DNA of 64,000 bases from Macrostomum lignano. Taxonomy: Eukaryota. The notes beneath the pieces are model-generated. The model was not told the origin of the DNA, did no database searches, and saw only the letters and a list, made by a program, of their open reading frames with translations. The translations under genes were made by a program, and so were the position numbers. The stretch lies in the NCBI GenBank assembly GCA_002269645.1, contig NIVC01001012.1, forward strand, positions 1 to 64,000. Direction: 5' to 3'. This document shows, piece by piece, positions 1-61,915 of the stretch (within the stretch, counting starts at the first letter, position 1; each line of letters begins with the position of its first letter).

Positions 1-3000
1 AGCTGGCTTTCGCCATTGCTATAACCGCTAGTCGCTTGCTTTGCGGTGACGTACAGGCAGACACCGGTGACCACCAGGATGAACACTGAAAGCAGCAGGC
101 TAACTGCTCCAATCGCGACTGCCGCGTAGGTTCTTCTAGGAGCGTTCGGATCGGATTCGCTGCTAGCTTAGCTTGGGCTTCAGCGTCAACGGAAACGGTT
201 CAGAGCGGCTGATGTTGTAAACTGTTGTTCCTCGAAACGTCTGCCTTCCGCTACACTGGATTCTCACAAAGATGCTGCTCCATAGCAGCGCCAGAGGAAT
301 CTTTGCGAGCTTCCACCGCTGAGTTGACGTTTGCTTCATGTTCTGCACGCTTGTGTTGCAACCAAAGTCAGCTGTGCACTGCACATCGGGAAACATTCCA
401 TCCGGAATCTGCTCTTGTGACCATGACGGACATGTTTCTGTCGTTCAACTCTGGTGGGGATATTTTCATGCTTGTTTTGTCTGAAATGGCGGTCACAAAT
501 ACATCTGACAATGAGCTTTGAATTTATCAAGTGTACAAAGAATCAGTGAGCTCACAGAAAACTGCAGGCAGTTGATTGGCGCTGGTCTCTACGTCTGGGT
601 ACTCGACTCCTGACTGGTTGACCTGGCAGCGCACCAGCCATCGGCTCCGGGCCATCCACCGGCTCACCCACAGCTGGTGCTCGCTGCTGAAGTCTGCGCT
701 CTGAGGATGGATGAGAATGATTGTTACATTTACCTTCAACTCGAGTTTAGTAATTTCAACTACGTAACTACAGAACATTATTATGCATAACACGAAGTAC
801 AACAATACTGGTACTTCATTACAAATAGTTGACTTCTTAGATTTCCTCTAACCAGAAACTGCAGCTCCTCTGTCAATAAGCAGTCAGTACAACGCAAACC
901 GAGTCATAAAATTTACCTGAACTTTCTTGAGCAGCTGGGAGAATGGAACTGCCGAGTCAATTAACCAGCAGCTGTGGCTCACGGGCCAGAAGCTGCAGCT
1001 GTCTGACCTGACCCTGACTGTCCTGACCTCGTGCTCACGCCAGAACTCGGCCTGCTCAAACTCAATCCGCGTCACACAGGGCTCTGGAGAGAAAAGACGT
1101 CGGAACTGTGCGCTGGATGGTGTGCCAAATAATTCAGATTGTTTCTCTCATTGGCTTACCGCTAATAGCTGCGATGCTGTGACGTTTCGCTACAGAGGTG
1201 ACACTTCCAGTTGTTGCAAAACTTTCTTTGCAATTAATGTAATTAGCCTTCATCCACTTCGACACTGTGAAGGTAAACGTGGACTTCACAGAAAAGACAG
1301 GCAGGTTTTCCGAGTTCCAAGTGATATTCCTTTCCTGCGAATTCGATATTGAGTGAGAGAATGTGAAACACAATGCAGGATAAATCTGCCAAGCAGAACT
1401 TGGGTTGCTTACAATGACTGCAGCTGTCAGAACCTCAGCCTGTGATGAAGGTGCATTCGAACTGCTAGCTCCGATCCAGCACACGTGTCGCGGCTCCGGA
1501 GAAGAGTCTGTGGTGATGAAGCTGACGGAAGCTGTTCTTCCGGACACCAACACATCGGGAGGCGAAATTTCTGACTGAATTGGCGGAACTGAAAAGCGAA
1601 TTTCTGGTCTCGTATTACAGAGCGGCTTTAGTGGCTCCAATAAAAACATTGTGAGCTGAACTCACTTCTCAATAGCAGCATTCGCTCAAGTCTTGTATCT
1701 CTTTGACGTCCTCGACTGCAGCTGAGCAGTGCGCCCTGATGCTCCAAGCTCGATTTGAATTCAAACATTTGCTGACATTCTTCATGGATCGTTCGCAACT
1801 ACAATGCCAGAATTTCTCTCTAATCGGAATTATACCGAATGAAAATTGATGTTCATGAAAACCTACATGATTGACCCTGAATTGTTTTCCATTGCGGTTC
1901 CGTATGCTGCAGTTAAGCCTTGAGCTGGTGGTTTTTAAGCCACAGTCCCGCACGGAAAAGCAGATGGGATCGCCGACAGAAGATTTTCCGATGTTGTCCA
2001 GACTGGTGCACATGGGAGTGTCAACGTCAAGCAGCTGCAGACAGGCGGGTCGACCTGAAAAAGGCGCGAGTTGACTACAGAACTCCAGACCAGAATCAAT
2101 AATTTGAGCGCATTTACCTGTCAGGTTGAGTGCAGACCACTGCAGGTCGCCTGAGCTGTTCTTCAGAAGAATGAAGGACACTAGGACCTGCCAGTCAAGT
2201 TTGATAGCATTGGTCTTCTGAAGGCATTAACTAATATCTTAATGCATGCAACATAAGACAACAGGTCTGTGGTGACTACCTGGACATTGATCTGTCTCCA
2301 CCGGTCGCTGCTGCCGTAGGTCTCCCAGCTGGCCCGGCACGGATCCTCCAGCTGCAGCTCCAGCGGGAGGCTCGAGGCTACGACCGCTGACACGGGCGAG
2401 CCGACCGGAGCTGCTGCGAGCCACTGGCCATCTGCAACACGAGTGCTTGGCTGCTAGCTGGTCTCACACTGTGTCAGAGTGCTAATTAGATGCTAGCTGG
2501 TCTCACACTGTCTCAGAGTGCTAATTTAGATGCTAGCTGGTCTCACACTGTCTCAGAGTGCTAATTAGATGCTAGCTGGTCTCACACAGTCTCAGAGTGC
2601 TAATTAGATGCTAGCTGGTCTCGCACTGTCTCAGAGTGCTAATTAGATGCTAGCTGGTCTCGCACTGTCTCAGAGTGCTAATTGGCTGCTTGCAGGTCTC
2701 ACACTGTCTCAGAGTGCTAATTGACTGCTTGCAGGTCTCACACTGTCTCAGAGTGCTAATTAGATGCTAGCTGGTCTCACACTGTCTCAGAGTGCTAATT
2801 AGATGCTAGCTGGTCTCACACTGTCTCAGAGTGCTAATTAGATGCTAGCTGGTCTCACACTGTCTCAGAGTGCTAATTAGATGCTAGCTGGTCTCACACT
2901 GTCTCAGAGTGCTAATTAGATGCTAGCTGGTCTCACACTGTCTCAGAGTGCTAATTAGATGCTAGCTGGTCTCACACTGTCTCACACTGTGTCCCAGACT

Positions 3001-3420
3001 CCCTCTGCCTCATCATGCATCATGAGAATGAGTCGGTCAGCGTCACTCACCCCAGTCTCGCACGCTCACCGCCTCCAGCATCATCGGCTGCCTCAGCTGC
3101 ATCACAAGCCACCGAGGCCCGGACCGCACAGCAGCAGGGAATCGGTTTGTCTCTGACTGCCGACTCTCCCACCAACGGCAGTGCGCACCGCTGGGTTGCC
3201 AGGTGCGCAGAACGTCAGCCCTGCTCAGCTGCACTGTGACTGAAACATTTTGACTCAGCTGTCAGTATCTGTGGTTTTCGATTAAAGTTTTTCAAAACCT
3301 GCATATTCTGACATAGATCATCAGCTCACCTTCATGTATTGCGTCAGTGCATTGGGCTTCTGCGCTAGAGACCCGAAGGCTCAGCAGCGCCGGCAGAAGC
3401 AGCCAAATCTGCTGCTTCAT
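1..3420 (-). pseudogene. Ig-like/discoidin-like single-pass receptor paralog 1; probably frameshifted; 3' end runs off the window
   Basis: Exons 3330-3420 (signal MKQQIWLLLPALLSLRVSSAEA), 3051-3239 and 2280-2431, then exons matching copy 2 down to a TM segment (AAVAIGAVSLLLSVFILVVTGVCLY, ~50-130). Splice phases match copy 2. Relative to copy 2 there is an extra G at 388-390 and an AGCTT duplication at 165-174, both breaking the frame. Confidence 0.75.
2452..2985. repeat. 39-bp intronic minisatellite, ~13 units
   Basis: Unit TGCTAGCTGGTCTCACACTGTCTCAGAGTGCTAATTAGA in intron 2 of paralog 1. Confidence 0.95.
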
Positions 3421-6849: not shown

Positions 6850-9800
6850 CTATTCAAAGTGATTCACTCGAATGGTGATCTCCCAGTACTCGTCTGGATC
6901 CTCATAGTAGGTGCCGTCCTGGCTTGGAGTTCGCAGCTGCAGGGCATGCGGAGTTTCCAGCGTCGGCAGGTCAGCCGGTGAAGTCTGCTGCACTTGAGCC
7001 TGGGCCACCACCCAAGCTGCCGTTAATTCTTTCTAGAATAATTGGACAGGGAGATAAACAAAAATTGTATTGTGTTTCTGTCGTGCATGTCTAGCAATTC
7101 TAGCATAGCTTATTCAACTGCATAAAGTTGAAAATCAGAAAGTTCCACCTTGCCAAACCATCCTGTATAAATAACTATATGCATAGCTAGCCTCAACTAA
7201 AACTGAACTGTCGATAAGATAAATGTCGAGATTTTTACTCAACCCAAACAGGTAGTTAGGACACTAAACATAGTAAGCAGAGGCTAATATAATAAACAGA
7301 CAGAATTGATCAAGATTAGAACCATATCGTCAGTAAATCACTTGTAGAACTTCGCCCACCACTCCTTCCCCTGCACGTGTACAAAGCATGACTTTATCGG
7401 GTGGCGATTCGGAATACTAAGATAAAGCTGAAGTTCATCATTGTGATTAACTTTGTGTCTAACTAAACTCGGTTTAACAGAGTAAATAAGAGTGCAGAAC
7501 AGGTAAGCATGGCCTTCAAAGTAATTCCATGACAGTTCAGCAATAGAAGCTGGCATGCGTCCAATAATGATGGCTCGGATTGAAGGCCATCCATCAAATC
7601 AGAGAGGGGTCGCTTTCAATAGCTCGAATCATCACATCGAAAGTTTATGCAGTCCATTTCATAATACCGCATTTTCACCAACCCAAAATTTCATTAACCC
7701 TTAAAGGGCTTGGAAAGTCTCCTGTCCCTCATTGTATTTCGACATAGTGAAAATATGGGTTTGTGAAATTTCGGCGTTGTGCGATTTCTGGTCCGTGAAA
7801 TTTCGAGCTAATGAAAGACAGTATCTTTCGACATTGTGAAGATTTGAGTTGGTGAAACAAAGAGTGGGTTAGCATAGTTTCCCAATCGAACATGACTTAT
7901 TTAAACTTCTCACTAAGTGTGTTGCTGACGTCACAAGCCTTTACAGAGGTGCTCATTAAAACTGACTCGCCTACCTGTCTCTTGACTCGAGCCTGACCAG
8001 TACAGCATCCAGCTTCTTCTTCTTCTTCTTCTTCGGGCGTGCTCGGGCCAGGGCCCATGGCACCGGGCGTCAGATGGCGCCCGCCTTCCCGAGGAAGTTC
8101 AACACCGCGACGCAGTTCTCGAAAACTGCCGCGGGCTCCGGGCTTGGCCCCCAGAGGCGGCAGCGGTGTGATGTCAGGGCGGGGCAGGAGATCAGCAGAT
8201 GGGCCGCCGTCTCCTCTCCATCGCCACAGAAGCGGCAGGTGGGGGCCACGTCAACGCCGATGGCGGCCTGGAAGCCCGCAGGGCCGGGCAGCGGTCGGCG
8301 CGCAGCTGGCAGATCAGCCGCTCCTGCCGCCGCGTGAGGTCGCTTGTCGGCTGAGGCGGCAGGCGGCCCGCCGTGCAGGCAAGGTGCCAGGCAAGCGAGC
8401 TCGTGCTCGCCGCCTCGGTGGCCGCCGCGTTGTAGATCTGGTGCCAGCGGGCGAGGCAGTAGCGGCGGACGGCAGCCTGCGCGGCAGTGCAGTGCTCGCT
8501 GCCAGAAGCTCCCTGTTGAGTTTGACACCTTATTGACGCATAGGTAGACACCGGTGGAACCCACCATGAGCGCTGCGATCGCCAGGGTCACCACTCCGAA
8601 GAAGAACAACGCTTGAGTTTGCTTAGGACAGTCTGGATCGTATTCGCTGCTGGCTTGGGGTTTCAGAGTAAACGGAAACGTTGCAGAGCGGCTGATGTTG
8701 TAAACTGTCGTTCCTCGAAACGTCTGCCTTCCGCTGCAATGGATTCTCACAAAGATGCCGCTGCTCCAACATACAGCCAGAGGAATCTTTGCGAGCTCCC
8801 ACAGCTGAGCTGACGTTTGCTTCATGTTCTGCACACTTGTGTTGCCACCAAAGTCAGCTGTGCACTGCACATCGGAAACATTCCATCCGGGATCTGCTCT
8901 TGTGACCATGACGGACATGTTTCTGTCGTTCAACTCTGGTGGGGATATTTGCAAGCTGGTTTTGTCTGAAATGGCGGTCACACATCCATCTGACTAAAGC
9001 TTCGAAGTCATCGAGTGTAAAAAGAATCAGTGAGCTCACAGAAAACTGCAGGCATTTGACCTGCGCTGGTCTCTACGTCTGGGTACTCGACTCCTGACTG
9101 GTTGACCTGGCAGCGCACCAGCCAGCGGCTCCGGGCCATCCACCGGCTCACTGGCAGCTGGTGCTCGCTGCTGAAGTCCGTGCTCTGAGGATGGATGAGG
9201 ATGATTGCTGACCATGATAAAAATGACCTAATTCTAGTTCTGGAAGTGTGAAGCCGTGAAATCGAAGCAAAGTCCAAGGAATTGATGATGTAGTGGAGAA
9301 GTTGGTAGTTGGAGAAAAACTGTAAAGTGGAGACTTCAATAGTAAAGTAGCATTAGGTTATTTAGATTTTTCCGTCAACTTGTAAACCAATGCTCTCGAC
9401 ATTGGTTGCCACTGACGATGAGGCTGAGCTGAAAAAATCCTGTAGCTCGTATATCAACTTGCTGCGCTTCTGTAAATCAACGAAGCTTAGTTAAAGCTGC
9501 GCATTGCCTTCTTCCTCATTCTCGCATCTCAACTTGTATTCAAGATTTCTACTCTTGCTTTTATTCCTACCTTATGCGAATGCATTCTGGGAGAAGTTAA
9601 TAACGGAACTTTTCATGCTTCCAAACGCCTGCGACCTGACCAATATAGACAAACTAGAAAGTAGAAGACAAAACAGCCGTGCAGGGCGAGCAGAAGACTT
9701 CTCCAGATTTTTATATTAACTAATTTGGTATGATCAATAATACAAATGGAAGGACGAAAAAACATACGAGATACAACTAAAGTGAACTGCTGTATTCTTC

Positions 9801-12553
9801 GGCTCCGCTGTTACATGCACATGTAGTTGACAGAAGTCCACCGTGAACGATGAGGAGGAGACGATTGTCTGCACGTTTTGTATTTCCTTTGTTGAGCATT
9901 TAAAAGCGGCCATATTACTGACCAGGGAGTCTTTCTGGGTGAAAGAGCTTCTGCATCTACCTGCGTGTGTCGAATACTGCTCACTAAAAGGCATGAAGTG
10001 CTACAAATAAACTGTGAAGGACTTTTAAAAGGCTGTCTGTTGCTACTGTAGTTAACAATGCTGATTAATAGTTTATGTGTTAGCTTATACTTTTAATAAT
10101 ACTGGTAAATAGATGCATAAGAACACAAGGACTCGATTAATTATTACATTCAGATTGTCTTCACCTGCACTTTCTTGAGCAGCTGGGAGAATGGAGCTGC
10201 CGAGTCGATTAACCAGCAGCTGTGGCTGACGGGCCAGAAGCTGCAACTGTCTGACCTGACCCTGACTGTCCTGACCTCGTGCTCGCGCCAGAACTCGGCC
10301 TGCTCAAGCTCAATCCGCGTCACGCAGGGCTCTGTGGAGAAAATACATTGGAACTTTGCAATGGGTAACGTACCAGATAATCTGGATTGTTTCTCTCATT
10401 GGCTTACCGCTAATAGCTGTGATGCTGTGACGCTTCACCACAGAGGTGACACTTCCAGTTGTTGCAAAACTTTCTTTGCAATTAATGTAATTAGCCTTCA
10501 TCCACTTCGACACTGTGAAGGTAAACGTCGACTTCACAGAAAAGACAGGCAGGTTTTCCGCGTTCCTAGTGATCTTCCTTTCCTGCGAATTCGATAGTGA
10601 GTGAGAGAATGTGAAACACCAGCTAAGCTAAATCTGCCAAGCAGAACTTGGGTTGCTTACAATGGCTGCAGCTGTCAGAACCTCAGCCTGTGATGAAGGT
10701 GCATTCGAACTGCTAGCTCCGATCCAGCACAGGTGTCGCGGCTCCGGAGAAGAGTCTGTGGTGATGAAGCTGACGGAAGCTGTTCTTCCGGACACCAACA
10801 CAGCGGGAGGCGAAATTTCTGACTGAATTGGCGGAACTGAAAGGCGAATTTCTTGTCTCGTATTACAGAGCGGCTTTAGTGGCTCCAATAAAAACATTGT
10901 GAGCTGAACTCACTTCTCAATAGCAGCATTCGCTCAAGTCTTGTATCTCTTTGACGTCCTCGACTGCAGCTGAGCAGTGCGCCCTGATGCTCCAAGCTCG
11001 ATTTGAATTCAAACATTTGCTGACATTCTTCGTGGATCGTTTGCGTCTGCAATGCCAGAATTTCTCTCTAATCGGAATTATACCGAATGAAAATTGATAT
11101 TCATGAAAACTTACATGATTGACCCTGAATTGTTTTCCATTGCGGTTCCGTATGCTGCAGTTAAGCCTTGAGCTGGTGGTTTTTAAGCCGCAGTCCCGCA
11201 CAGAAAAGCAGATGTGATCGCCGACAGAAGATTTTCCGATGTTGTCCAGACTGGCGCATATGGGAGTGTCAACGTCAAGCAGCTGCAGACAGGCAAGTCG
11301 ACCTGAAAAAGGCGCGAGTTGAGCACTGAACTTAATCAATAAATCAATAATTTGAGCGCATTTACCTGTCAGGTTGAGTGCAGACCACTGCAGGTCGCCT
11401 GAGCTGCTCTTCAGAAGAATGAAGGACACTGGGACCTGCCATTCAAGTTTGATAGCATTGGTCTTCTGACATCAGCTTTAGATATTTATATGCATGCGAC
11501 ATAAGGCAGCAGGTCTGTAGTGACTACCTGGACATTGAGCTGCCTCCACCGGACTCTGCTGCTGCCGAAGGCCTCCCAGCTGGCGCGGCACGGATCCTCC
11601 AGCTGCAGCTCCAGCGGGAGGCTCGAGGCTCCGACCGCTGACACGGGCGAGCCGACCGGAGCTGCTGCGAGCCACTGGCCATCTGCAACACGAGTGCTTG
11701 GCTGCTAGCTGGTCTCACACTGTCTCAGAGTGCTAATTAGATGCTAGCTGGTCTCACACTGTCTCAGAGTGCTAATTAGATGCTATCAGGTCTCACACTG
11801 TCTCAAAGTGCTAATTAGATGCTAGCTGGTCTCACACTGTCTCAGAGTGCTAATTAGATGCTAGCTGGTCTCACACGGTCTCAAAGTGCTAATTAGATGC
11901 TAGCTGGTCTCATACTGTCTCAGAGTGCTAATTAGATGCTAGCTGGTCTCACACTGTCTCAAAGTGCTAATTAGATGCTAGCTGGTCTCACACTGTCTCA
12001 GAGTGCTAATTAGATACTAGCTGGTCTCACACTGTCTCAGAGTGCTAATTAGATTCTAGCTGGTCTCACACTGTCTCAGAGTGCTAATTAGATGCTAGCT
12101 GGTCTCACACTGTCTCACACTCTTTGTCCCAGACTCCCTCTGCTTCATCATGCATCATGAGAATGAGTCGGTCAGCGTCACTTACCCCAGTCTCGCACGC
12201 TCACCGCCTCCAGCATCATCGGCTGCCTAAGCTGCATCAAGAGCCACCGAGGCCCGGACCGCACAGCAGCAGGGAATCGGTTTGTCTCTGACTGCCGACT
12301 CTCCCACCAACGGCAGTGCGCACCGCTGGGTTGCCAGGTGCGCAGAACGTCAGCCCTGCTCAGCTGCACTGTGACTGAAACGTTTTGATTCAGCTGTCAT
12401 TATCTGTGGTTTTCGATTAAAGTTTTTCAAAACCTGCATATTCTGACAGATCATCAGCTCACCTTCATGTTTTGCGTCAGTGCATTGGGCTTCTGCGCTA
12501 GAGACCCGAAGGCTCAGCAGCGCCGGCAGAAGCAGCCAAATATGCTGCTTCAT
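6850..12553 (-). CDS. Ig-like/discoidin-like single-pass receptor paralog 2: 12 exons, ~724 aa before a LINE insertion in exon 11
   Basis: Exons 12463-12553, 12186-12374, 11528-11682, 11366-11435, 11115-11302, 10914-11046, 10661-10836, 10408-10582, 10165-10331, 9040-9184, (8507-8989 + 7975-8010), 6850-7016. All introns are GT-AG with matching phases and the exons sum to 2175 nt. Features: signal peptide, Ig-like strands (HQGALLSCS; FITTDSSPEPRHLCW), TM FFFGVVTLAIAALMVGSTGVYLCV, tail ending GTYYEDPDEYWEITIRVNHFE*. Domain names are pattern-based inference. Confidence 0.8.
8015..8506 (-). mobile_element. 5'-truncated LINE (CCHC zinc knuckle, (GAA)n tail) inserted in a receptor TM exon
   Basis: GC-rich. 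Encodes ...CRFCGDGEETAAHLLISCPAL...VLNFLGKAGAI*. (CTT)7 at 8013-8033 is the 3' tail. AGCT duplication at 8011-8014 and 8507-8510. Internal frameshift near 8280. Confidence 0.9.
11703..12115. repeat. 39-bp intronic minisatellite, ~10 units
   Basis: Same unit as 2452-2985, in intron 2 of paralog 2. Confidence 0.95.
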
Positions 12554-26825: not shown

Positions 26826-26880
26826 TTGCGACCAGAAACAAAGAGAATCTGTTTCAGCATCTCGCGGCTCAACTCTTAGA

Positions 26881-43945: not shown

Positions 43946-44435
43946 TAGCAGGACTACTGACTACTTTTAGATGTTCGTGACCTAGCCCCCTAGTACATGT
44001 ACTTAAAGCTACTTATAAAAATCTGCCTGCATCATAATGTCAGCTACTTAAACCACAGCCGGCGCACAAGCTCCCGGGGAGAACAACTATGATCTTATCC
44101 CATGAAAATTGCCGCGTCATTAAGGCTTCATAAATTGAGCGATAACTGTTGCCTCATTTGTATCGTCCAATACTCGTAACTCAAACAGTTTTCTGAGACC
44201 GTGTATTTATTTGAGAAATTCAGCAAAATATATTGACAATTTCGTAGAAGTGTTGAGTTTTATTATTGACTCGATGAAAAATGCGCATTTTGTTTTTTAT
44301 TCAAGCAACTTACGTAGGCGCATGTAGTATTCATAGGTAGAAGAAAATCATGAGAAAGTATTAGAACGCAAACTGATGTGTGAATATAAGCATTTAGAGA
44401 GAAATTTTATACGCTTTTAGATCAACCTTAACTCT

Positions 44436-45404: not shown

Positions 45405-48047
<2,643 letters not shown>

Positions 48048-48764
48048 CTGCAATGGAAAATGTTATTTGATGATAATTAAATATAATTGAAAGACTATAG
48101 TTAAAATTGGCAAAACTGTAATCTTGACTGACAGTAAAATCAACGAGCAGTAAACAATAGAAATAAACAGAACTGAAATCTTCGTATAATGCCGTGGACA
48201 ATTGTTCTGAAAGGTGGCAATTTTAAATTAATTAGTTGCCATTAATTGTAATCTTAAACCTATTAACCACAGCGTTGAGCTTACCATGTCGGAAATTATT
48301 GATAGATGATAGCTAAATATCGATCTGTATTCTATTCTGCGCTCGTTTGCGTGACGCAGAACTGGTTGAATAGGAGCTACGCTAGAGAGAGAGAATGTTC
48401 TAAAAATAGAAACACTCGCTTTACCCCATGCCCCCAGAAAAAAGCCAGCAGCATTTATTTGTACAGCAGGGGGCAGGGATGGCCCATGGATTTCCCTTGG
48501 AATTGTCCTGGGTTGGCCGATTGTTGCTGAGCAGGTTCCAGGTTTGAACGGTTATCCCGCGGAAAGCTTTTAGACCTGCCATGGAATTGCCTAAATTAAA
48601 ACACTTCGAGTTAATGCCGACTGAATGACACAGGCTTGAGGCTGCTATATATTTATATTCTCTAACCTAGTGTCTCCAAATTTTTTATTAGGACTAATTT
48701 TATGAACTTTTGTATCTTTTTTCACCAATTTAAGCTTACTGCCCATGAACGAATTCTGGCTTCC

Positions 48765-49822
48765 TGTCCCCAGTTGTGACTTTACGTCATAAATTATGGC
48801 TTCCTGTCTCTAATTAAGGCTTCCTGTCTCTGATTATGGCTTCCTGTCTCTAATTATGGCTTCCTGTCTCTAATTATGGCTTCCTGTCTCTAATTATGGC
48901 TTCCTGTCTCTAATTATGGCTTCCTGTCTCTAATTATGGCTTCCTGACTCTAATTATGGCTTCCTGTCTCTAATTATGGCTTCCTGTCTCTAATTATGGC
49001 TTCCTATCTCTAATTATGGCTTCCTGTCTCTAATTTATGGCTTCCTGTCTCTAATTATGGCTTCCCGTCACCAATTGTGGCTTCCCGTCACCAATTCTGG
49101 CTTCCCGTCACCAGTTATGGCTTCCCGTCACCAATTATGGCTTCCCGTCACCAGTTATGGCTTCCCGTCACCAGTTATGGCTTCCCGTCACCAATTCCGG
49201 CTTCCCATCACCAATTCTGGCTTCCTGTCACCAATTCCGGCTTCCCATCACCAATTCTGGCTTCCTGTCACCAATTATTGCTTCCCGTCACCAGTTATGG
49301 CTTTCCTTCACTTATTTTGGCTTGCCGTTACCAATTATGGCTTCCCGTCACCTATTATGGCTTTCCTTCACCAATTATGGCTTCCTGTCACCTATTATGG
49401 CTTCCTGTCACCTATTATGGCTTTCCGTCACCAATTATGGCTTTCCTTCACTTATTTTGGCTTCCCGTCACTAATTCTGGCTTCCCGTCACCAATAATGG
49501 CTTCCCGTCACCAGTTATGGCTTCCCGTCACCAGTTATGGCTTCCCGTCACCAATTCCGGCTTCCCATCACCAATTCTGGCTTCCTGTCACCTATTATGG
49601 CTTCCCGTCACCAATTATGGCTTCCCGTCACCAATTATGGCTTCTTGTCACCAATTATGGCTCCCTGTCACCTATTATGGCTTCCCGTCACCCATTCTGG
49701 CTTCCTGTCACCTATTATGGCTTCCCGTCACCAATTATGGCTTCCCGTCACCAATTATGGCTTCCGTCACCAATTATGGCTTCCTGTCACCTATTATGGC
49801 TTCCTGTCACCTATTATGGCTT
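48765..49822. repeat. 20-bp minisatellite
   Basis: TGGCTTCCTGTCTCTAATTA units changing to TGGCTTCCCGTCACCAATTA variants. Confidence 0.95.
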
Positions 49823-50200: not shown

Positions 50201-53200
50201 CTAACGGTAGTACACGAAGGTGCTCCCATCGAGTTCGTAATGCCCAGCCGCCTCAGTCCAGCATTCTTCATCGCTAGAGGACAGACTATCTGGCTCCGTG
50301 TCCTCCTCCACATCATCTATGGCGGCTACAGTCACTAAGACTGGCGAAGCTGGTGGATTCTGAAATTTAAAATTGCAGTCAAGTTTTATTGCTGATGTCT
50401 AACAGCTGACACACAAATGTCTAACAGACTGACACACGGATGTCTAACAGCTGACACACATGTCTAACAGCTGACACACGGATGTCTAACAGCTGACACA
50501 CATATGTCTAACAGCTGACACACATGTCTAACAGCTGACACACGGATGTCTAACAGCTGACACATATGTCTAACAGCTGACACACGGATGTCTAACAGCT
50601 GACACACGAATGTCTAACAGCTGACACATATGTCTAACAGCTGACACACGGATGTCTAACAGCTGACACACATGTCTAACAGCTGACACACAAATGTCTA
50701 ACAGACTGACACACGGATGTCTAACAGCTGACACACATGTCTAACAGCTGACACACGGATGTCTAACAGCTGACACACGGATGTCTAACAGCTGACACAT
50801 GGATGTCTAACAGCTGACACATATGTCTAACAGTTGACACACGGATGTCTAACAGCTGACACATATGTCTAACAGCTGACACATGGATGTCTAACAGCTG
50901 ACATACAGATGTATAACAGACTGACACACGGATGTCTAACAGCTGACACACAAATGTCTAACAGACTGACACACGGATGTCTAACAGCTGACACACATGT
51001 CTAACAGCTGACACACGGATGTCTAACAGCTGACACACATGTCTAACAGCTGACACACGGATGTCTAACAGCTGACACATATGTCTAACAGCTGACACAC
51101 GGATGTCTAACAGCTGACACACGGATGTCTAACAGCTGACACACATGTCTAACAGCTGACACACAAATGTCTAACAGACTGACACACGGATGTCTAACAG
51201 CTGACACACATGTCTAACAGCTGACACACGGATGTCTAACAGCTGACACACGGATGTCTAACAGCTGACACATGGATGTCTAACAGCTGACACATATGTC
51301 TAACAGTTGACACACGGATGTCTAACAGCTGACACATATGTCTAACAGCTGACACATGGATGTCTAACAGCTGACATACAGATGTATAACAGACTGACAC
51401 ACGGATGTCTAACAGCTGACATACATATGTCTAACAGACTGACACTCGGATGTCTAACAGCTGACACACGGATGTTTAACAGCTGACACACGGATGTTTA
51501 ACAGCTGACACACGGATGTCTAATAGCTGACACACGGATGTTTAACAGCTGACACACGAATGTCTAACAGCTGACACACGGATGTTTAACAGCTGACACA
51601 CGGATGTCTAACAGCTGACACACGGATGTTTAACAGCTGACACACGGATGTCTAACAGCTGACACACGGATGTCTAACAGCTGACACACGGATGTCTAAC
51701 AGCTGACACACGGATGTCTAACAGCTGACATACATATGTTTAACAGCTGACACACGGATGTCTAACAGCTGACATACATATGTTTAACAGCTGACACACG
51801 GATGTCTAACAGCTGACACACGAATGTCTAACAGCTGACACACGGATGTTTAACAGCTGACACACGGATGTCTAACAGCTGACACACGGATGTCTAACAG
51901 CTGACACACGGATGTCTAACAGCTGACACACGGATGTCTAACAGCTGACACACGGATGTCTAACAGCTGACACACGGATGTCTAACAGCTGACATACATA
52001 TGTTTAACAGCTGACACACGGATGTCTAACAGCTGACATACATATGTTTAACAGCTGACACACGGATGTCTAACAGCTGACACACGGATGTACAACATTT
52101 TAAACCAATAATTTTAAAGGACCCGAGGGCCGGAGTTATCTGACCCCTTGAATTTAGCCACTTAACCTGTAGGTAAAATTTCACAATGTCCCAGATTTCA
52201 CTTACAATAGCTGAAGTTGAAGTTGCGGTAAATATCACAAAATTCAGTTTATAGTATAAATAATAACTACAGAATAACGCCGGTAAAATAAGCCAGATTT
52301 TTATCAGATTTCGCAAGTTCGCTTTCCAATGAGATTTTAATTACAAGCGCATGTTATTATTAAAATAGCTGGTATTTTCGCAAAAGTAGAACTTCAGCCA
52401 GCAGATCATAAACAGTTTGTACAGTGTTTACCATCATTGCAGCATGCTCGTCAATTCGATGGCTATTGGTATGATAGCATTTTTAGTATGGTCACATTTG
52501 CCACTTAACCTTCTCAAAAAACTACGTAATCAATGCATGCGCCATACCTGATGAAAGGCCCCTGAGGCTGCTGTGGAGACTGTGCAATTGGTTTCGCTGC
52601 CAAGCTCGTCATCATTCGACTCATCGTACGAGTATAGCGAGGACGTCGCTCTCACCCTGGAGAATCTGACAGCCAGCTTGCAGCCCACACCGATGGCGGA
52701 GACTGCAACTGCGAGCAGAAATATGCTGACGAATATTCGCTTGGCGTTCGCGGACGATTTCCCTGTGCAATTGAAATGAGGCCATTGATTTTAGTGCTAT
52801 CTTTAAGGTAAAATCAGATCTGCAGCTATTTGGTCATCACTCACTTCCAGTTGAGAACTTGGCTTCAACATTCGGGTACGGCAGGCCTGACTGACTGACG
52901 CTGCACCTGACCAGCCAGTCCCGGCTTTCCTGACCTCCGGGTAGCCGAGCCCAGTGAGAGCTGCTGAAGCCGGTCTGCTGCAGTTTGCATTGGCGAGTTT
53001 CTATAATTATTAATTAATTGCTGATAGGCATTGCGATTCCTCTGAACTTACCTGTGCGCTGCTCATTTTTAGCCGGATGTGGGCCGCTGCACCTCCACCG
53101 ACCTGAGTTAGCCAGCAGCTGTGGCTGACATTCCATACGCTGCACTGCTGTGACGTCACTCTGACTGTGAGACATCGATGCTGGATGCTGATCAAGTGGA

Positions 53201-56200
53201 TGACCGTCAGGCAGGGCCCTGTAACGGTTAGCATTTTGCTTGGAATGTAATAATAATAATAATAGTCGTAATACTCATAATAATAACCATTGAGTACACC
53301 TTGCCCATTGAGTACACCTTGCCCATTGAGTACACCTTGCCCATTGAGTACACCTTGCCCATTGAGTACACCTTGCCCATTGAGTACACCTTGCCCATTG
53401 AGTACACCTTGCCCATTGAGTACACCTTGAATTATAAGAATAGTAATAACAATGATTGATTGCACCTGCCCCCCATGGGCAGATGTGCAACCGACAGCTC
53501 AGCCGCAGCTATTGCGCGGCGCATCTGAAAGCTGCGTACGGCTGTTCAGGACTGGGGGGCCTGGGGGGGTCGCCACACACACACCCTCAATTACCCGAGC
53601 TAATGCCGGCACCCATTTTTACAGCTGGGTGAACTGAAGCAATGCAGAGTTAAGTGTTTTGCTCAAGGACACAAATTGTTCCAGTGGGATCGGGAAACGA
53701 ACCCCCGACCTTCAAGTTATGAATCCGATGCTCTAACCACTAGGCTGAAACCCCCGACATTTGGAATGTAAATCGACCCAGTAATTCTGTTAACTGTTTC
53801 GTTTTTGAAGATTCTAAAAATATTTGGAGTTCGAATCTTATGCAGACAGACAGGGCATCAAAGGGTGCCAAATTAGTCAGCTGAATTGCCAACAGAAATG
53901 CAGTTATGCGCACACTCAGTTATGGAAACAATTCTAAAACAGCTCACCACTTATTGCTGATATAAAATAACTGTCGTTGTTTTGCACTTCGACGTTTTGC
54001 TCGCCTTCAAACCTGCCCTCGCATTTTAATGTGCCGTTCAGCATCGCGACGCTGACCTGGAATCTGAACTGAGACGCCACCGCCACCAGGGTCCGATTGT
54101 TGTGATTTTTTGCGACAGCTGTTTCTAGCTGGAAGTCGTTTAAATGTCAGCAGTAATTAACAGTCAGCAGTAATTAACAGTCAGCAGTAATTAAATGTCA
54201 GCAGTAATTAACAGTCAGCAGTAATTAACAGTCAGCAGTAATTAACAGTCAGCAGTAATTAACAGTCAGCAGTAATTAACAGTCAGCAGCAATTAACAGT
54301 CAGCAGTAATTAACAGTCAGCAGCAAAACTGTCAGCAGCAATTAACAGTCAGCAGTAAAACTGTCAGCAGTAATGAACAGTCAGCAGTAATTAACAGTCA
54401 GCAGTAATTAACAGTCAGCAGTAATTAACAGTCAGCAGTAATTAACAGTCAGCAGTAATTAACAGTCAGCAGTAATTAACAGTCAGCAGTAATTAACAGT
54501 CAGCAGTAATTAACAGTCAGCAGCAATTAACAGTCAGCAGTAATTAACAGTCAGCAGTAATTAACAGTCAGCAGTAATTAACAGTCAGCAGTAATTAACA
54601 GTCAGCAGTAATTAACAGTCAGCAGTAATTAACAGTCAGCAGCAAAACTGTAAGTCACAGCTGATCTCATAGGGATGATCTGCAGAAAGTCATGAGTTCA
54701 TCTCACATTTGTGCGGTTTTCATCCAGACGCCACTCAGAGCTGGCAGAAATGATGCTGCAGCTGTGATGCAGTGCTGGGTAAGCCGGAGCTGATGTGACA
54801 TTCACAGTGACGCTGCTGCCGCTGACCCACACGGGTGACACCGATACTGACAGGCTGGCAGGGGGAACTGAAACATAAACATGTTGAAGTAATTGCAACA
54901 TAACTTCCTCAACAGAAACCCATCCCTGATTAAAACGCTCTCACATAAAACCCCAATAGTCTGCTCAATGCGCTCAGCAGGTCGGTCTGTCAGAAAGCAG
55001 CTGAGCGTCGCATCGTGCATTGCCGAGGTGGCATTGAGTTTGAACACTGCGGGCTGTGCCTGGCTGTTCAGCTGCCGTGGTGAAGACTGAAGAGTTTGAT
55101 AAAAAAATTTAGCAACGCTTCGCACAATTCAAACTATTCAAAAAGATTGGCGCACCTGTTTCAGTTGATGAGTTGACCCGTTGCTGTAGTTCAATAGACA
55201 GCCAAGCGAGCCGTCAAGACAGCTCGAAACTGAGAGGCAGGCCATGTTCCCATCCTTTATGGCTTGCAGGTTTCTAAACGGACATAGAGTGCTGTTCATC
55301 ACGGTGAGGTTCAGTGGAGCAACAGGACCTAAAAATAACGTGACGTCTTGTGACTCGAAATTTAACGCATCAATTAGAAGTAGGTATTCTATTAATATTT
55401 TAATTAAAGACCTGACAGTTTCAAGGCACTCCAACTTAGTGGAACATTCGTACAGCTCCTGACCAGTATGTACAGGACTGTGCTCTGAAGCAGAAAAATG
55501 CACTTGCTTTTTATCAATACTTTTAATAAATAATCCAATCATGCATAGGTACACTACAGGTTCAAGGCAAACATTGCTACCTCATTGTAAGCTCTTCCAA
55601 GCTGCCTCCACCGGTCGCTGCTGCCGAAGGCCTCCCAGCTGGCGCGGCACGGATCCTCCAGCTGCAGCTCCAGCGGGAGGCTCGAGGCTCCGACCGCTGA
55701 CACGGGCGAGCCGACCGGAGCTGCTGCGAGCCACTGGCCATCTGCAACACGAGTGCTTGGCTGCTAGCTGGTCTCACACTGTCTCAGAGTGCTAATTAGA
55801 TTCTAGCTGGTCTCACACTGTCTCAGAGTGCTAATTAGATGCTAGCTGGTCTCACACTGTCTCAGAGTGCTAATTAGATGCTAGCTGGTCTCACACTGTC
55901 TCAGAGTGCTAATTAGATGCTAGCTGGTCTCACACTGTCTCAGAGTGCTAATTAGATGCTAGCTGGTCTCACACTGTCTCAGAGTGCTAATTAGATGCTA
56001 GCTGGTCTCATACTGTCTCAGAGTGCTAATTAGATGCTAGCTGGTCTCACACTGTCTCAGAGTACTAATTAGATGCTAGCTGGTCTCACACTGTCTCACA
56101 CATTGTGTCCCAGTCTCCTTCTGCCTCATCATGCATCATAAGAATGAGTCGGTCAGCGTCACTCACCCCAGTCTCGCACGCTCACCGCCTCCAGCATTAT

Positions 56201-56563
56201 CGGCTGCCTCAGCTGCATCACAAGCCACCGAGGCCCGGACCGCACAGCAGCAGGGAATCGGTTTGTCTCTGACTGCCGACTCTCCCACCAACGGCAGTGC
56301 GCACCGCTGGGTTGCCAGGTGCGCAGAACGTCAGCCCTGCTCAGCTGCACTGTCGCTGCAACATGTTTGTTAAAATAAACCCAGCTTTCGTGCCCAGCGC
56401 ATAAAAAAACGGTTGATAAAGAGTTTGCTTCAAGTTCTTGGCCAAACTTTTCTTGCTTACGATTTCTGTTGACTGCAGTTTGTGTGCAGTTTGAGAACGC
56501 CTTGATGAACTGCAGACTGAAAACTAGAAATAGCAGAGGCGTCCTGCACCGCCAGTAAGCCAT
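50201..56563 (-). CDS. Ig-like/discoidin-like single-pass receptor paralog 3: 12 exons, possible frame break at the start of the TM exon
   Basis: Exons 56461-56563 (signal), 56167-56355, 55581-55741, ~55412-55484, ~55153-55328, ~54945-55088 (HDATLSC), ~54710-54867, ~53947-54127, ~53053-53219, ~52845-52980, ~52550-52800 (TM IFVSIFLLAVAVSAIGVGCKL), 50201-50359 (...HYELDGSTFVYYR*). Phases parallel paralog 2, except that I could not find an in-frame acceptor for the TM exon. Confidence 0.7.
50393..52093. repeat. 21-23-bp minisatellite in the last intron of paralog 3
   Basis: ATGTCTAACAGCTGACACACGG units with internal block duplications. Confidence 0.96.
53287..53429. repeat. 18-bp tandem repeat x8 next to a SINE tail
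   Basis: CCCATTGAGTACACCTTG units. Confidence 0.95.
53445..53746 (-). mobile_element. tRNA-Met-derived CORE-like SINE
   Basis: Head AGCCTAGTGGTTAGAGCATCGGATTCATAACTTGAAGGTCGGGGGTTCG resembles elongator tRNA-Met (CAT loop); body matches the other copies. Confidence 0.85.
54145..54650. repeat. 17-bp minisatellite in intron 7 of paralog 3
   Basis: AACAGTCAGCAGTAATT units. Confidence 0.96.
55762..56098. repeat. 39-bp intronic minisatellite, ~8 units
   Basis: Same unit as at 2452 and 11703. Confidence 0.95.
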
Positions 56564-57619
56564 TTTGGCGTTGCAGTTTATTCACAAATGCTGACGGTTG
56601 AAAACGTCATGGCTGAAAATCGTTTTATTTTTTAATTGATTTCATACAGGTGTTTCACGCAGTCGCAGAAACGACTGGTCTTGGACTGGTTAATTCCGAG
56701 TGGGTGTCTCTGCAATCGCAACGTCTAAAATAAGTATACAGCCATCTAAATTGGGTTTAATTTAATTATATTTATAATTTCTTGGATTCAGTTGAAATGA
56801 AACTTGATCCAAATTGGATCGCTACTTGTTGATAATTTCGTCTCCGAAAGCGGCCAAATTGACTGTAATTGGATTGCAAGCACATGTAAACCAGGGGTCA
56901 AAACATCCGAGATAGTTTATGTATTTATATTAGCATTTCACTTGGAAGAACTATTATGCCCTCGAATATTTACGCCTGTAGCTATTAACAAGAAGAGAGT
57001 TTTCTGTCCAAAAAAAACTATCCTAAGGTCATCCTTCCTATATACTAAAAATGAGTTGTCTGTGGGTATGCGATAGATTTCAGAAAAATTGGCTCAACCA
57101 ATTTTCTTCAAACTTGCACCATTCGATCAGAAATTTTCCTGGGACGGTACATGCATATTGGCTAAGAAATTGCTCAATGTTAAAGGGATTAAATATTCGA
57201 AAAACATGCTTTTTTGCAAAGGTCAAGCAGCTCTTTCGACCTGAAATGCATTGTAAGAATGCTAGAGAAAAAACTGACTGACTGAATTCCAATTGTGATA
57301 AAGGTTGCATAACAACAAGTTGAAAACAGTACCGAAGAAATGCACACACGACTTGATTGAAATTGCGTAACCATATTGCTAACTTAAATTAAGACTGATA
57401 CTGGCTGACTGAGAAATTGATTATGTCATAACTTTCTACTCCAATTGACTTGCTATAAGAATTGAATTATAAGGGCCACAATTCATGTTCTCCAATTGAA
57501 AAGAGATAGCCCTGATGCGAACAGACTGGAATGCTAATGTAGCAACCTGGGTTCGAATCTTAGTAGTGCAAAAAAGATTTTTTTTATTAAAACACCTTAA
57601 AAACACAAAACTGCTAAAC

Positions 57620-60600
57620 ATAAAAGAAGCGCAATGTCAAACATAGAAGAGCCACCATGTCAAACATTAAAGAGCCAACATATCGAACATAAAAGAGTTA
57701 CCATGTCAAACATAAAAGAGCCACCATGTCAAACCTAAACGAGCCACCATGTCTAATACCACCTCTCGTATTTAAGAGGCACCATGTAAAACATATAAGT
57801 GACTTTATGTCAAACATAAAAGAGCCACCATTTCGAACATTAAAGAGCCACCATTTCGAACATTAAAGAGCCACCATGTCGACCATAAAGGAGCTAACAT
57901 GTCAAACATAAAAGAGCTAACATGTCAAACATAAAAGAGCTAACATGTCGAACATAAAGAGCCACCATGTCAAACATTTAAGAGCCACCATGTCAAACAT
58001 ATATGTGACTTTGTGTCAAACATTAAAGAGCCACCATTTCGAACATTAAAGAGCCACCATGTCAAACATGAAAGAGCTATAACATGAAGAATATTAAAGA
58101 GCCACCATGTTGAACATAAAAGAGCCGCCATGTAAAATATTAAAGAGCTACCATGTTAAACATAAAAGAGCCACAATGTAAAACATTAAAGAGCCACCAT
58201 GTTAAAAATTTAAGAGCCTTCGTGTCAAACCTAGAAGAGCCACCATGTCGAACATAACAGAGCTACCATGTCAAACATTAAAGAGCCACCATGTCAAACA
58301 TTCAAAAGCCACATTGTCAAATATTAAAGAGCCACCATGTCAAACATAAAAGAGCCAACATGTCAGACATTAAAAAATCCACCGTATCAAATATAAAAGA
58401 GTTACCATGTAGAACAAAAAAGAGCCACCATTTCGAACAAAAAAGAGGCACCATGTCAAACATAAAAGAGCCAACATGTCAAACATTTATGTGACTTTAT
58501 GTCAAATGTTAAAGAGCCACCATTTCGAACATAACAGAGCTACCATGTCAAACATTAAAGAGCCACCATGTCAAACATAAAAGAGCCACCATGTAAAACA
58601 TTAAAGAGCCACCATGTCAAACATTAAAGAGCCACCATGTCGAACATTAAAGAGCCACCATGTCAAACATAAAAGAGCCACCATGTCAAACCTAAACGAG
58701 CCACCATGTCTAATACCACCTCTCGTATTTAAGAGGCACCATGTAAAACATATAAGTGACTTTATGTCAAACATAAAAGAGCCACCATTTCGAACATTAA
58801 AGAGCCACCATTTCAAACATTAAAGAGCCACCATGTCGACCATAAAGGAGCTAACATGTCAAACATAAAAGAGCTAACATGTCAAACATAAAAGAGCTAA
58901 CATGTCAAACATAAAGAGCCACCATGTCAAACATTTAAGAGCCACCATGTCAAACATATATGTGACTTTGTGTCAAACATTAAAGAGCCACCATTTCGAA
59001 CATTAAAGAGCCACCATGTCAAACATGAAAGAGCTATAACATGAAGAATATTAAAGAGCCACCATGTTGAACATAAAAGAGCCGCCATGTAAAATATCAA
59101 AGAGCTACCATGTTAAACATAAAAGAGCCACAATGTAAAACATTAAAGAGCCACCATGTTAAAAATTTAAGAGCCTTCGTGTCAAACCTAGAAGAGCCAC
59201 CATGTCGAACATAACAGAGCTACCATGTCAAACATTAAAGAGCCACCATGTCAAACATTCAAAAGCCACATTGTCAAATATTAAAGAGCCACCATGTCAA
59301 ACATAAAAGAGCCAACATGTCAGACATTAAAAAATCCACCGTATCAAATATAAAAGAGTTACCATGTAGAACAAAAAAGAGCCACCATTTCGAACAAAAA
59401 AGAGGCACCATGTCAAACATAAAAAAGCCAACATGTCAAACATTTATGTGACTTTATGTCAAATGTTAAAGAGCCACCATTTCGAACATAACAGAGCTAC
59501 CATGTCAAACATTAAAGAGCCACCATGTCAAACATAAAAGAGCCACCATGTAAAACATTAAAGAGCCACCATGTCAAACATTAAAGAGCCACCATGTCGA
59601 ACATTAAAGAGCCACCATGTCGAACATAACAGAGCCAACATGTCAAACCTAAACGAGCCACCATGTCTAATACCACCTCTCGTATTTAAGAGGCACCATG
59701 TAAAACATATAAGTGACTTTATGTCAAACATAAAAGAGCCACCATTTCGAACATTAAAGAGCCACCATTTCAAACATTAAAGAGCCACCATGTCGACCAT
59801 AAAGGAGCTAACATGTCAAACATAAAAGAGCTAACATGTCAAACATAAAAGAGCTAACATGTCAAACATAAAGAGCCACCATGTCAAACATTTAAGAGCC
59901 ACCATGTCAAACATATATGTGACTTTGTGTCAAACATTAAAGAGCCACCATTTCGAACATTAAAGAGCCACCATGTCAAACATGAAAGAGCTATAACATG
60001 AAGAATATTAAAGAGCCACCATGTTGAACATAAAAGAGCCGCCATGTAAAATATCAAAGAGCTACCATGTTAAACATAAAAGAGCCACAATATAAAACAT
60101 TAAAGAGCCACCATGTTAAAAATTTAAGAGCCTTCGTGTCAAACCTAGAAGAGCCACCATGTCGAACATAACAGAGCTACCATGTCAAACATTAAAGAGC
60201 CACCATGTCAAACATTTAAGAGCCACCATGTCAAACATATATGTGACTTTGTGTCAAACATTAAAGAGCCACCATTTCGAACATTAAAGAGCCACCATGT
60301 CAAACATGAAAGAGCTATAACATGAAGAATATTAAAGAGCCACCATGTTGAACATAAAAGAGCCGCCATGTAAAATATTAAAGAGCCACCATGTTGAAAA
60401 TTTAAGAGCCTTCGTGTCAAACCTAGAAGAGCCACCATGTCGAACATAACAGAGCTACCATGTCAAACATTAAAGAGCCACCATGTCAAACATTCAAAAG
60501 CCACATTGTCAAATATTAAAGAGCAAGAGCCACTATGTCAAACATTTAGGAGCCACTTTGTCAAACATTAAAGAGCCACCATGTCAAACATAAAAGAGCC

Positions 60601-61915
60601 AACATGTCAGACATTAAAAAATCCACCGTATCAAATATAAAAGAGTTACCATGTAGAACAAAAAAGAGCCACCATTTCGAACAAAAAAGAGCCACCATGT
60701 CAAGCATAAAAGAGCCAACATGTCAAACATTTATGTGACTTTATGTCAAATGTTAAAGAGCCACCATTTCGAACATAACAGAGCTACCATGTCAAACATT
60801 AAAGAGCCACCATGTCAAACATAAAAGAGCCACCATGTAAAACATTAAAGAGCCACCATGTCAAACATTAAAGAGCCACCATGTCGAACACTAAAGAGCC
60901 ACCATGTCGAATATTAAAGACCACCATGTCAAACATTAAAGAGCCACCATGTCAAACATTAAAACTCACCATGTTAAACAATAAAGAGCCACCATATCAA
61001 GCATAAAAGAGCCACCATGTCAAACCTAAAAGAGCCACCATGTCGAAAATTTAAGAGCCAAAATTTAGAATATAAAAGAGCCACCATGTGTACCATATAA
61101 GTGACTTTATGTCAAACATTTAAGAGCCACCATGTTAAACCTAAAAGAGCCACCATGTTAAACCTAAAAGAGCCACCATGTTAAACCTAAAAGAGCCATC
61201 ATGTCAAACATTAAAGAGCCACCATGCCACACATAAGGGAGCCACCATGTCCAACATATATGTGACTCCATGTCAAACATTTAAGAGCCACCATGTCAAA
61301 CATTAAAGAGCCACCATGTCAAACATTAAATGGCCACCATGTCGAACATAAAAGAGCCACCATGTCAAACATTAAATGGCCACCATGTCGAACATAAAAG
61401 AGCCACCATGTCAAACATATACGTGACTCCATGTCAAACATAAAAGAGCCACCATGTTGAACATTAAAGAGCCACCATGTCAAACATATACGTGACTCCA
61501 TGTCAAACATAAAAGAGCCACCATGTTGAACATTAAAGAGCCACCATGTCAAACATATACGTGACTTATGTCGAAAATTAAAGAGCCATCATGTCAAACA
61601 CAAAAAAGCTACCATGTCAAACATAGAAGAGACACCATATCAAACATAGAAGAGCCACCATGTAAAACATAAAAGAGCCACCATGTCGAACATTAAAGAG
61701 CCATCATGTAAGACATAAAAGAGCCATCATGTCAGACATAAAAGAGCCACCATGTCGAACATAAAAGAGCCACCATGTGAAACATATATGTGACTCCATG
61801 TCAAACATTAAAGAGCCATCTTGTCGAACACAAAAAAGCCACCATGTCAAAAATTTATGAGCCACCATTTCAAACATAAAAGAGACACCGTTTCAAACAT
61901 AAAAAGAAGTGTCAT
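57620..61915. repeat. 23-bp satellite (TAAAGAGCCACCATGTCAAACAT) with a 957-bp higher-order repeat
   Basis: The marker AAACCTAAACGAGCC...TAATACCACCTCTCG recurs at 57731, 58688 and 59645. Duplicated ORFs are offset by 957. Confidence 0.95.

Follow-up and report, generated by a model that had tools for sequence, protein, structure and literature searches.

A minisatellite-centred cassette probably kept near-identical by recurrent gene conversion in a receptor-like gene family of the flatworm Macrostomum lignano

Introduction

Gene conversion is itself a known process, and the closest documented precedent for the case described here is that of the clustered protocadherins. According to the passage of PMC3966226 that cites Noonan et al. 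2004 (Genome Res 14:354), one region of the ectodomain encoded by their variable exons is homogenised while the rest diversifies, and conversion has also been reported in the fugu clusters (PMC1852091). Here, we analyzed a window of 64,000 nucleotides (nt) from the flatworm Macrostomum lignano (assembly GCA_002269645.1, contig NIVC01001012.1, positions 1-64,000), in which three genes for receptor-like membrane proteins (A, B, and C) carry a near-identical cassette made up of exon 2, intron 2, and the start of exon 3, with a 39-bp minisatellite (variable number tandem repeat [VNTR]) at its center. From the pattern of the sequences, it appears quite likely that recurrent non-allelic (interlocus) gene conversion, i.e., regional concerted evolution, keeps the cassette near-identical, leaving the rest of each gene to diverge freely.

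As in the protocadherins, we are dealing with tandem cell surface paralogs in which one subregion is >95-99% identical at the nucleotide level, synonymous sites included, and the rest is diverged; GC content at third codon positions (GC3) is raised in the converted part, and trees built from the converted region are misleading. However, the M. lignano tract spans an intron and two exons, whereas that of the protocadherins is part of one large exon. It is also minisatellite centered and N-terminal, with a 5' boundary that is exact to the nucleotide at a splice acceptor, whereas the protocadherin tracts are membrane proximal or cytoplasmic and act within a subcluster only, and it reaches across contigs, in an orphan flatworm family without a Pfam domain. 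Another parallel is the pair of human fetal gamma-globin genes HBG1/HBG2, for which Slightom, Blechl, and Smithies reportedly described in 1980 a conversion tract bounded by a simple-sequence repeat in intervening sequence 2 (IVS2), proposed as a hotspot or boundary. There, too, the tract covers 5' exons and part of an intron, and the tandem simple repeat is intronic, but two genes are involved and a dinucleotide repeat sits at the tract edge, whereas in M. lignano there are 12 genes or more and the tract has a 39-bp minisatellite in its center. Minisatellites acting as meiotic hotspots (human MS32 and CEB1, studied by Jeffreys and colleagues) send conversion-type exchanges into the flanking DNA. 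They have similar 10- to 60-bp units and highly variable copy numbers; their exchanges, however, are allelic and take place at single loci, whereas here the exchange would be between paralogous loci and the hotspot activity is putative. Lastly, gene modules are reshuffled in KIR/LILR-type clusters and in the sea urchin Sp185/333 genes by non-allelic recombination at segments that are either conserved or flanked by repeats. These, too, are tandem families of surface receptors (possibly Ig-like in the case of M. lignano) that use conserved segments as recombination junctions for 5'/3' combinations, the difference being that the M. lignano junction is a coding cassette with a VNTR and not a conserved intron or flanking microsatellites. 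A literature search retrieved no description of this receptor family, nor of gene conversion in Macrostomum.

Three copies of the cassette in the window

The copies in the window, and the minisatellite of copy C, are located as follows.

55600..56355, minus strand: cassette copy C, comprising exon 2, intron 2 with the VNTR, and the first ~142 nt of exon 3 (self-BLAST and three-way alignment)
2292..3239, minus strand: cassette copy A, with exon 2 at 3051-3239, the VNTR at 2452-2984 (13.6 units), and exon 3 at 2280-2431
11538..12374, minus strand: cassette copy B, with exon 2 at 12186-12374, the VNTR at 11703-12117 (10.6 units), and exon 3 at 11528-11682
55762..56098, no strand assigned: 39-bp minisatellite in the middle of the tract of copy C, gene-strand unit TCTAATTAGCACTCTGAGACAGTGTGAGACCAGCTAGCA, 8.6 units (Tandem Repeats Finder)

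When the window was compared with itself by BLAST (E=0 in all cases), positions 55600-56098 were 97.2% identical to 11538-12039 and 95.8% to 2292-2789, and positions 55762-56369 were 96.4% identical to 2648-3252 and 95.2% to 11781-12387. Outside the VNTR, exon 2 plus the 5' part of the intron was 94.6-97.6% identical in pairwise comparisons of A, B, and C, the first 130 nt of exon 2 being invariant; downstream of the repeat, identity was 97.9-100% over the 140 nt within the tract and 93.4-95.2% for blocks extending past its end. Exon 2 of A and C is identical at 185/186 nt, with zero synonymous differences, and the cassette part of exon 3 at 133/138. Beyond the tract, the two genes match at 51% of the nucleotides of exon 1, 58% of those of exon 4, and 56% of those of exon 5, and their proteins are 42% identical over exon 4 and about 30-50% over the exons that follow. 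The genes are collinear homologs with matching intron phases, saturated outside the tract. A three-way alignment with 700-nt flanks indicated that copy C shares the tract alone with A and B, with abrupt edges and unalignable flanking introns; in this copy, the tract starts 2 nt into exon 2 and ends at about 55600, i.e., 20 nt before the exon 3 donor.

A and B, on the other hand, are tandem segmental duplicates, 91-95% identical well beyond the cassette (1-3455 versus about 8650-12600), and the cassette of C is at least as close to those of A or B (95-100%) as the A and B flanks are to each other. A recent whole-gene segmental duplication was considered as well; it holds for A-B, but C versus A/B and most other pairs lose their flank identity. 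An earlier note on this DNA had given the coordinates of the three copies, their numbers of repeat units, and a description of the boundaries, all of which were correct by Tandem Repeats Finder, self-BLAST, and alignments. Its statement that the paralogs are otherwise diverged applies to C (51-58% nucleotide identity in neighboring exons) but not to the tandem duplicates A and B.

The open reading frames (ORFs) coding for the receptor-like proteins of A, B, and C are all on the minus strand, and the gene structures can be described as follows (aa, amino acids; TM, transmembrane).

50204..56563, minus strand: gene C, approximate extent, type I membrane protein, model P0015 (487 aa; tblastn of P0015)
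56461..56563, minus strand: gene C exon 1, not part of the tract, encoding signal peptide MAYWRCRTPLLFLVFSLQFIKAFSNCTQTAVNRN; P0015 has an identical start
56167..56355, minus strand: gene C exon 2, 189 nt, phase 1-1, encoding (P)TVQLSRADVLRTWQPSGAHCRWWESRQSETNRFPAAVRSGPRWLVMQLRQPIMLEAVSVRDW(G), matching models P0001 and P0015
56361-56356 and 56166, minus strand: splice signals of gene C exon 2, acceptor ttgcag (56361-56356) and donor GTGAGT (at 56166)
55742..56166, minus strand: gene C intron 2, containing the VNTR
55581..55741, minus strand: gene C exon 3, 161 nt, donor GTAGCA; the cassette takes 55600-55741 and the last ~20 nt (LGRAYNE) are C specific
55412..55484, minus strand: gene C exon 4 (STVLYILVRSCTNVPLSWSALKLSG), diverged homolog of exon 4 of A (2116-2190; 42% aa and 58% nt identity)
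1..3420, minus strand: gene A, exon 1 at 3331-3420, 3' end off the window start, tandem duplicate of B; model P0011 maps to 2432-3
6859..12553, minus strand: gene B, exon 1 at 12464-12553, TM exon at about 8541-8936, adjoining a GC-rich stretch

The GC-rich stretch (8039-8536) that abuts the TM exon of gene B has long ORFs on both strands and may be a retroelement fragment. A minus-strand read-through ORF (8070-8981) continues into it from the TM exon.

The cassette across the gene family

We added two further contigs of the same assembly, L001 (97 kb, reached via protein model P0014) and L002 (31 kb, via P0028), so that in total 192 kb of DNA from three contigs were examined. L001 is a different locus from the window, since in a whole-window BLAST the cassette alone matches, apart from one copy with a C-like downstream region. 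Six cassettes were found in L001 (L1 to L6) and three in L002 (M1 to M3), all on the gene strand and each with its 39-bp VNTR, which brings the number of genomic copies to 12; some of the comparisons below use nine copies (window and L001) and others all twelve. Among the 12 copies, the median identity is 97.1% both in the upstream unique half (92.6-99.2) and in the downstream half (94.3-100). The boundaries are also common. In the nine copies, mean pairwise identity rises from ~0.3 through 0.86 to 0.96-1.0 at the exon 2 acceptor; before it, intron 1 of one lineage bears no resemblance to that of another, as far as the ag dinucleotide of this acceptor. At the other side, identity decays about 110-150 nt into exon 3, with a 3' end that is ragged over about 30 nt. 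The cassette of the family can thus be defined as exon 2, intron 2, and about 110-140 nt of exon 3, that is, about 400 unique bp plus the minisatellite, from which the tract reaches about 250 bp upstream (to the exon 2 acceptor) and about 140-170 bp downstream.

The minisatellite and the cassette always go together. Within the window, Tandem Repeats Finder located the 39-bp unit only at 2452-2984, 11703-12117, and 55762-56098, and in the 192 kb of the three contigs all 12 arrays sit in cassettes and each cassette has one array. The arrays range from 4 to 43 units, a variation between paralogs and not between alleles. They occupy the center of the tract, and the two halves of the cassette at either side show different affinities. 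By eye, each unit holds CTAATTAG, a palindromic homeodomain-type core, which would give 4-43 such sites per intron 2, and also GCTGGT, a partial match to the Chi-like minisatellite core.

The same picture emerges from the proteins. The cassette peptide matches M. lignano proteins only, and an exhaustive HMMER search gave 22 family representatives; all ten that were looked up are M. lignano entries. P0015 and P0011 are the models of genes C and A, respectively. Across about ten diverged lineages, exon 2 is identical at 59-62/62 residues and the cassette part of exon 3 at 39-45/45, while identity to A or C is 3-47% in the 30 aa before these parts and 12-40% in the 85 aa after them. Not all proteins follow this rule. 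P0024 has diverged along its whole length (22/59 and 15/36 identical residues in the cassette region and 26-32% after it), and the cassette region is therefore not intrinsically ultraconserved. P0018 has an exon 2 with 62/62 identical residues and an exon 3 with only 30/41, so the two halves of the cassette can be homogenised independently.

Copying versus constraint

Several tests were used to distinguish copying of DNA from constraint on the protein. In the nine copies, the intron is as conserved as the exons (exon 2, 96.8%; 5' unique intron, 95.0%; 3' unique intron, 100%; exon 3, 96.7%), and the low intron identity that the earlier note had mentioned as a possible objection was not found. 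Segregating exon sites by codon position were 13/6/7 and 4/4/5, without an excess at third positions. Flank sisters (A-B, C-L5, and L1-L2) are no closer to each other in the cassette than non-sisters. Over 381 aligned ungapped columns of the 12 copies, 323 are invariant, 51 have private variants, and 7 have shared ones, most of which unite copies of unrelated flank lineages; all the site pairs that are incompatible by the four-gamete criterion straddle the VNTR. The private variants (1-12 per copy) include 31 GC-to-AT and 8 AT-to-GC changes, an excess that can be explained because new mutations of this kind are expected on a GC-rich template. Each copy has about 1% private mutations on a common template, and the last homogenisation of every copy would therefore be younger than even the youngest gene duplications. 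GC3 is 0.73-0.87 in the cassette exons versus 0.54-0.70 in neighboring exons.

Two damaged copies of L001 are also informative.

L001 38078-38700: copy L3, which lacks the 3' intron and the beginning of exon 3 because of a deletion
L001 55680-55940: copy L5, with a 5-nt deletion and frameshift in exon 2 (which could be an assembly error) and an upstream half that is still homogenised

The intact upstream half of L3 is still 93-98% identical to all the other copies. Its exon 3 remnant, cut off from the VNTR, is 77-88% identical, a value from one copy and about 44 nt that resembles the flank divergence of L3 from its sister L6 (87%). A search of the cassette against Rfam gave one subthreshold match, outside the cassette, and no terminal repeats were found at the cassette edges, the only long inverted pair being located 50-90 nt outside, in C-specific sequence. 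Intron identity, site spectrum, discordance with the flanks, the behavior of L3, and the negative results for Rfam and terminal repeats therefore effectively rule out protein constraint, a transposable element, or simple duplication. The tests point to recurrent DNA-level homogenisation.

A likely mechanism and its alternatives

Non-allelic conversion would recurrently homogenise exon 2, intron 2, and the start of exon 3, the exchanges being presumably meiotic conversions. The minisatellite may act as the initiating hotspot, as suggested by its position in the center of the tract, by the semi-independent halves, and by the hotspots known elsewhere. Regarding the exact 5' boundary, selection might keep exon 2 convertible, with the short intron 1 (76-139 nt) at the edge being free to diverge.

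The earlier note had correctly seen conversion as the source of the tract, since we find DNA-level copying between paralogs and not protein-level constraint. However, it proposed one recent event, in which A/B-type exons 2 and 3 would have been copied into C across ~45 kb. The cassette of C is indeed 95-100% identical to those of A and B and groups with A upstream of the VNTR and with B downstream, but there are 12 copies on three contigs, nine of them outside the window, and about ten lineages, including the 3' sister of C (L5), share the cassette and its boundaries. Besides, the upstream half of C is about as close to L3, L6, M1, and M3 (96.9-97.2%) as to A (98.4%). The near-identity is a family-wide pattern and not one 45-kb event, and we find the single conversion very unlikely. 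Even less probable, in our opinion, is that purifying selection acts without any exchange, be it on the protein or on some DNA or RNA element within the tract. Such selection would fit the coding nature of exon 2, its invariant first 130 nt in A, B, and C, and a 5' boundary that coincides with the exon edge. But intron identity equals exon identity without a third-position excess, A and C lack synonymous differences in exon 2 when their other exons are saturated, similarity in the cassette ignores the phylogeny of the flanks, and the truncated L3 and the frameshifted L5 are still homogenised. P0024 shows that the region can diverge to ~37-42%, and Rfam had no match in the cassette.

An assembly artefact, i.e., a repeat-induced chimera or collapse that pasted the cassette into several gene contexts, deserves attention in a genome that is repetitive and redundant (PMC5730564) and in which many of the older gene models break exactly at intron 2. 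Nevertheless, the 12 copies carry private substitutions and different VNTR lengths, they are found in collinear, in-frame gene contexts with matching intron phases, and in models from two sources (UniRef A0A1I8... and NCBI PAA...) the same exon 2 follows exons 1 of different types. The length of the cassette (0.6-2 kb) is below that of typical PacBio reads, which also weighs against an artefact, and we give this explanation hardly any credit. Equally remote seems a mobile or shuffled exon cassette, either a transposon-borne or a non-homologously inserted two-exon module, to which the identical boundaries of all copies and the symmetrical (phase 1-1) exon 2 could be ascribed. Its edges have no terminal inverted repeats (there is a splice acceptor at the 5' side, and at the 3' side a ragged limit inside a coding exon), all 12 copies are at the same position of collinear homologous genes, with none outside a family gene in the 192 kb, and P0024, P0007, and P0018 carry an in-frame diverged version, so that the region is ancestral to the family. 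Finally, the template for repair might have been RNA, specifically the complementary DNA of spliced-leader trans-spliced transcripts that start at the exon 2 acceptor and retain intron 2. This would explain a 5' boundary that is exact at the acceptor together with a ragged 3' end, and 38.8% of the M. lignano genes are trans-spliced (PMC5730564). Still, this acceptor would have to serve as a trans-splice site and intron 2 would have to be retained, neither a spliced-leader remnant nor a poly(A) trace was found, and DNA conversion plus selection is simpler; the chances of this route seem minimal.

Recurrent non-allelic conversion thus appears to be the best explanation, with several points that weigh against it. 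Conversion by itself would not predict that the 5' boundary falls exactly on the splice acceptor in every lineage, and selection has to be invoked in addition. The star-like variants fit ongoing conversion but also a single recent family-wide sweep followed by decay. Intron and VNTR within the tract have 46-49% GC, and GC-biased conversion is not evident across the tract. The mosaic of the three window copies, in which C groups with A upstream of the VNTR at 6 sites to 0 and with B downstream at 4 to 2, is suggestive only (Fisher p=0.06), and the L3 remnant is short and single. Every contig comes from a single inbred line (DV1), of a species whose genome is more than half repetitive, redundant, and difficult to assemble (PMC5730564), and conversion is deduced from the sequence pattern of this one species.

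Reassortment of 5' and 3' modules

The flanks of the cassette do not always have the same relatives at both sides. C and L5 have about 2 kb in common downstream of it (80-89%), but on the upstream side they are unrelated, in exon 1 and intron 1 as well as in the DNA that precedes the gene. L1 has the upstream kilobase and exon 1 (MQLCQVLQPVLIIL...) in common with M1 (95.8% over 914 nt) and the downstream sequence in common with M2 and L2 (96-97%), whose exon 1, according to the P0028 gene model, is of a different type from that of L1; the downstream flank of M1 matches no other copy. These discordant flanks (C/L5 and L1/M1/M2) indicate that the 5' and 3' modules have different histories and were joined at the cassette. 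Occasional crossovers or breakpoints in the cassette would recombine 5' modules (promoter, exon 1, and intron 1) with 3' modules, and discordance would be expected because these events occur in the sole long homology that the genes share. The earlier note had suggested domain swapping as a means of diversification. Conversion of the cassette does the reverse, as it homogenises what is the constant part of the genes, but a different kind of swapping, that of 5' and 3' modules across the cassette, does take place. We also considered that cassette and minisatellite could be a recombination module, maintained for germline (conceivably somatic) exchange of 5' regulatory/signal modules and 3' ectodomain modules, something that we regard as rather unlikely. 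If true, the flatworm would have a combinatorial route to receptor diversity, and the identity of the cassette would be selected for recombination competence.

Be that as it may, the family provides a clean natural case of sub-gene concerted evolution, with twelve copies, sharp common boundaries, a central minisatellite, and a truncated copy as a control. M. lignano is amenable to transgenesis and laboratory breeding, so the locus could be used to measure non-allelic conversion and any initiation of it by the minisatellite.

The protein family

A, B, and C belong to a tandemly clustered family of type I membrane proteins that is specific to M. lignano. This large family of surface proteins is lineage specific and unannotated, and its members combine a constant N-terminal segment with a variable remainder. 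The layout consists of a signal peptide exon, the N-terminal region, putative immunoglobulin (Ig)-like repeats of the beta-sandwich type, a TM segment, and an acidic tail, which in the long models closes with a common GHY(D/E)LDGxTFV motif. Pfam searches with exon pieces and full-length models gave only subthreshold chance matches, and a sequence search of the PDB found no match to a solved structure (best E=1.2). In the AlphaFold2 model of P0012, residues ~170-265, after the cassette, are confidently predicted to fold as a beta-sandwich, for which Foldseek gave weak matches to LILRB1, Fc-alpha receptor, LAG3, and NCAM (best E=2.5e-3). For the part encoded by the cassette, AlphaFold2 gave no confident model (predicted local distance difference test score [pLDDT] of <50; 31 in the run with exons 2-5 of A). 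The cassette encodes only part of the N-terminal region, and what is converted is not an "N-terminal domain" as had been proposed. A discoidin or galactose-binding-like N-terminal domain, guessed from the sequence, was backed by no tool and was dropped.

In this receptor family, the cassette and its VNTR are evidently a cause of broken assemblies or gene predictions, and the cassette will mislead trees, orthology calls, gene models, and assemblies. Models P0001, P0002, P0009, P0011, P0017, P0021-P0023, and P0025 end in ...VRDW or start with GQWLAAAP..., which is exactly at intron 2, and P0006, P0019, and P0020 read exon 2 in a shifted frame.

The window contains a second series of four paralogous genes, also on the minus strand (D to G; 14421-23165, 26658-29401, 31552-32934, and 45405-48076), each with four conserved exons, the last of them being a TM exon, with 27-83% aa identity and no Pfam match. 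We searched these genes for a diverged cassette and found none. They were therefore unusable as unconverted controls, and P0024, P0007, P0018, and L3 were used instead.

Other features of the window

Within an intron of the TM protein gene at 14.4-23.2 kb there is a GC-rich (58-63%) block (17700-21750) with long minus-strand ORFs that, by eye, looks like a DIRS/Ngaro-like tyrosine recombinase retroelement. Its ORFs are integrase-like (17964-18533), possibly reverse transcriptase/RNase H-like (19208-20202), and gag-like (20835-21743). On the plus strand, an intronless ORF of 467 aa (36199-37602) has a strong DNase II domain (PF03265, E=1.4e-51), and another of 144 aa (39789-40223), with a signal-like start and rich in cysteine (GCYPD..., CFCG...), may be WSC-like.

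Repeats other than the 39-bp minisatellite are frequent. A dispersed repeat of ~200-280 bp (85-87% identity) is present at 53445-53722 and 23379-23649 and, inverted, at 14429-14519 and 26558-26756; it sits in introns of several genes in both orientations and is probably a small transposable element. Long tandem arrays were found at 44430-45114 (10 bp, 68 copies), 48752-49822 (20 bp, 53 copies), 50394-52091 (22 bp, 78 copies, within gene C), and 54146-54642 (17 bp, 29 copies). A 23-bp satellite, AAACATAAAAGAGCCACCATGTC, occupies positions 57616-61904 and 63087-64000 with >180 and 40 copies, respectively, starting ~1 kb upstream of gene C.

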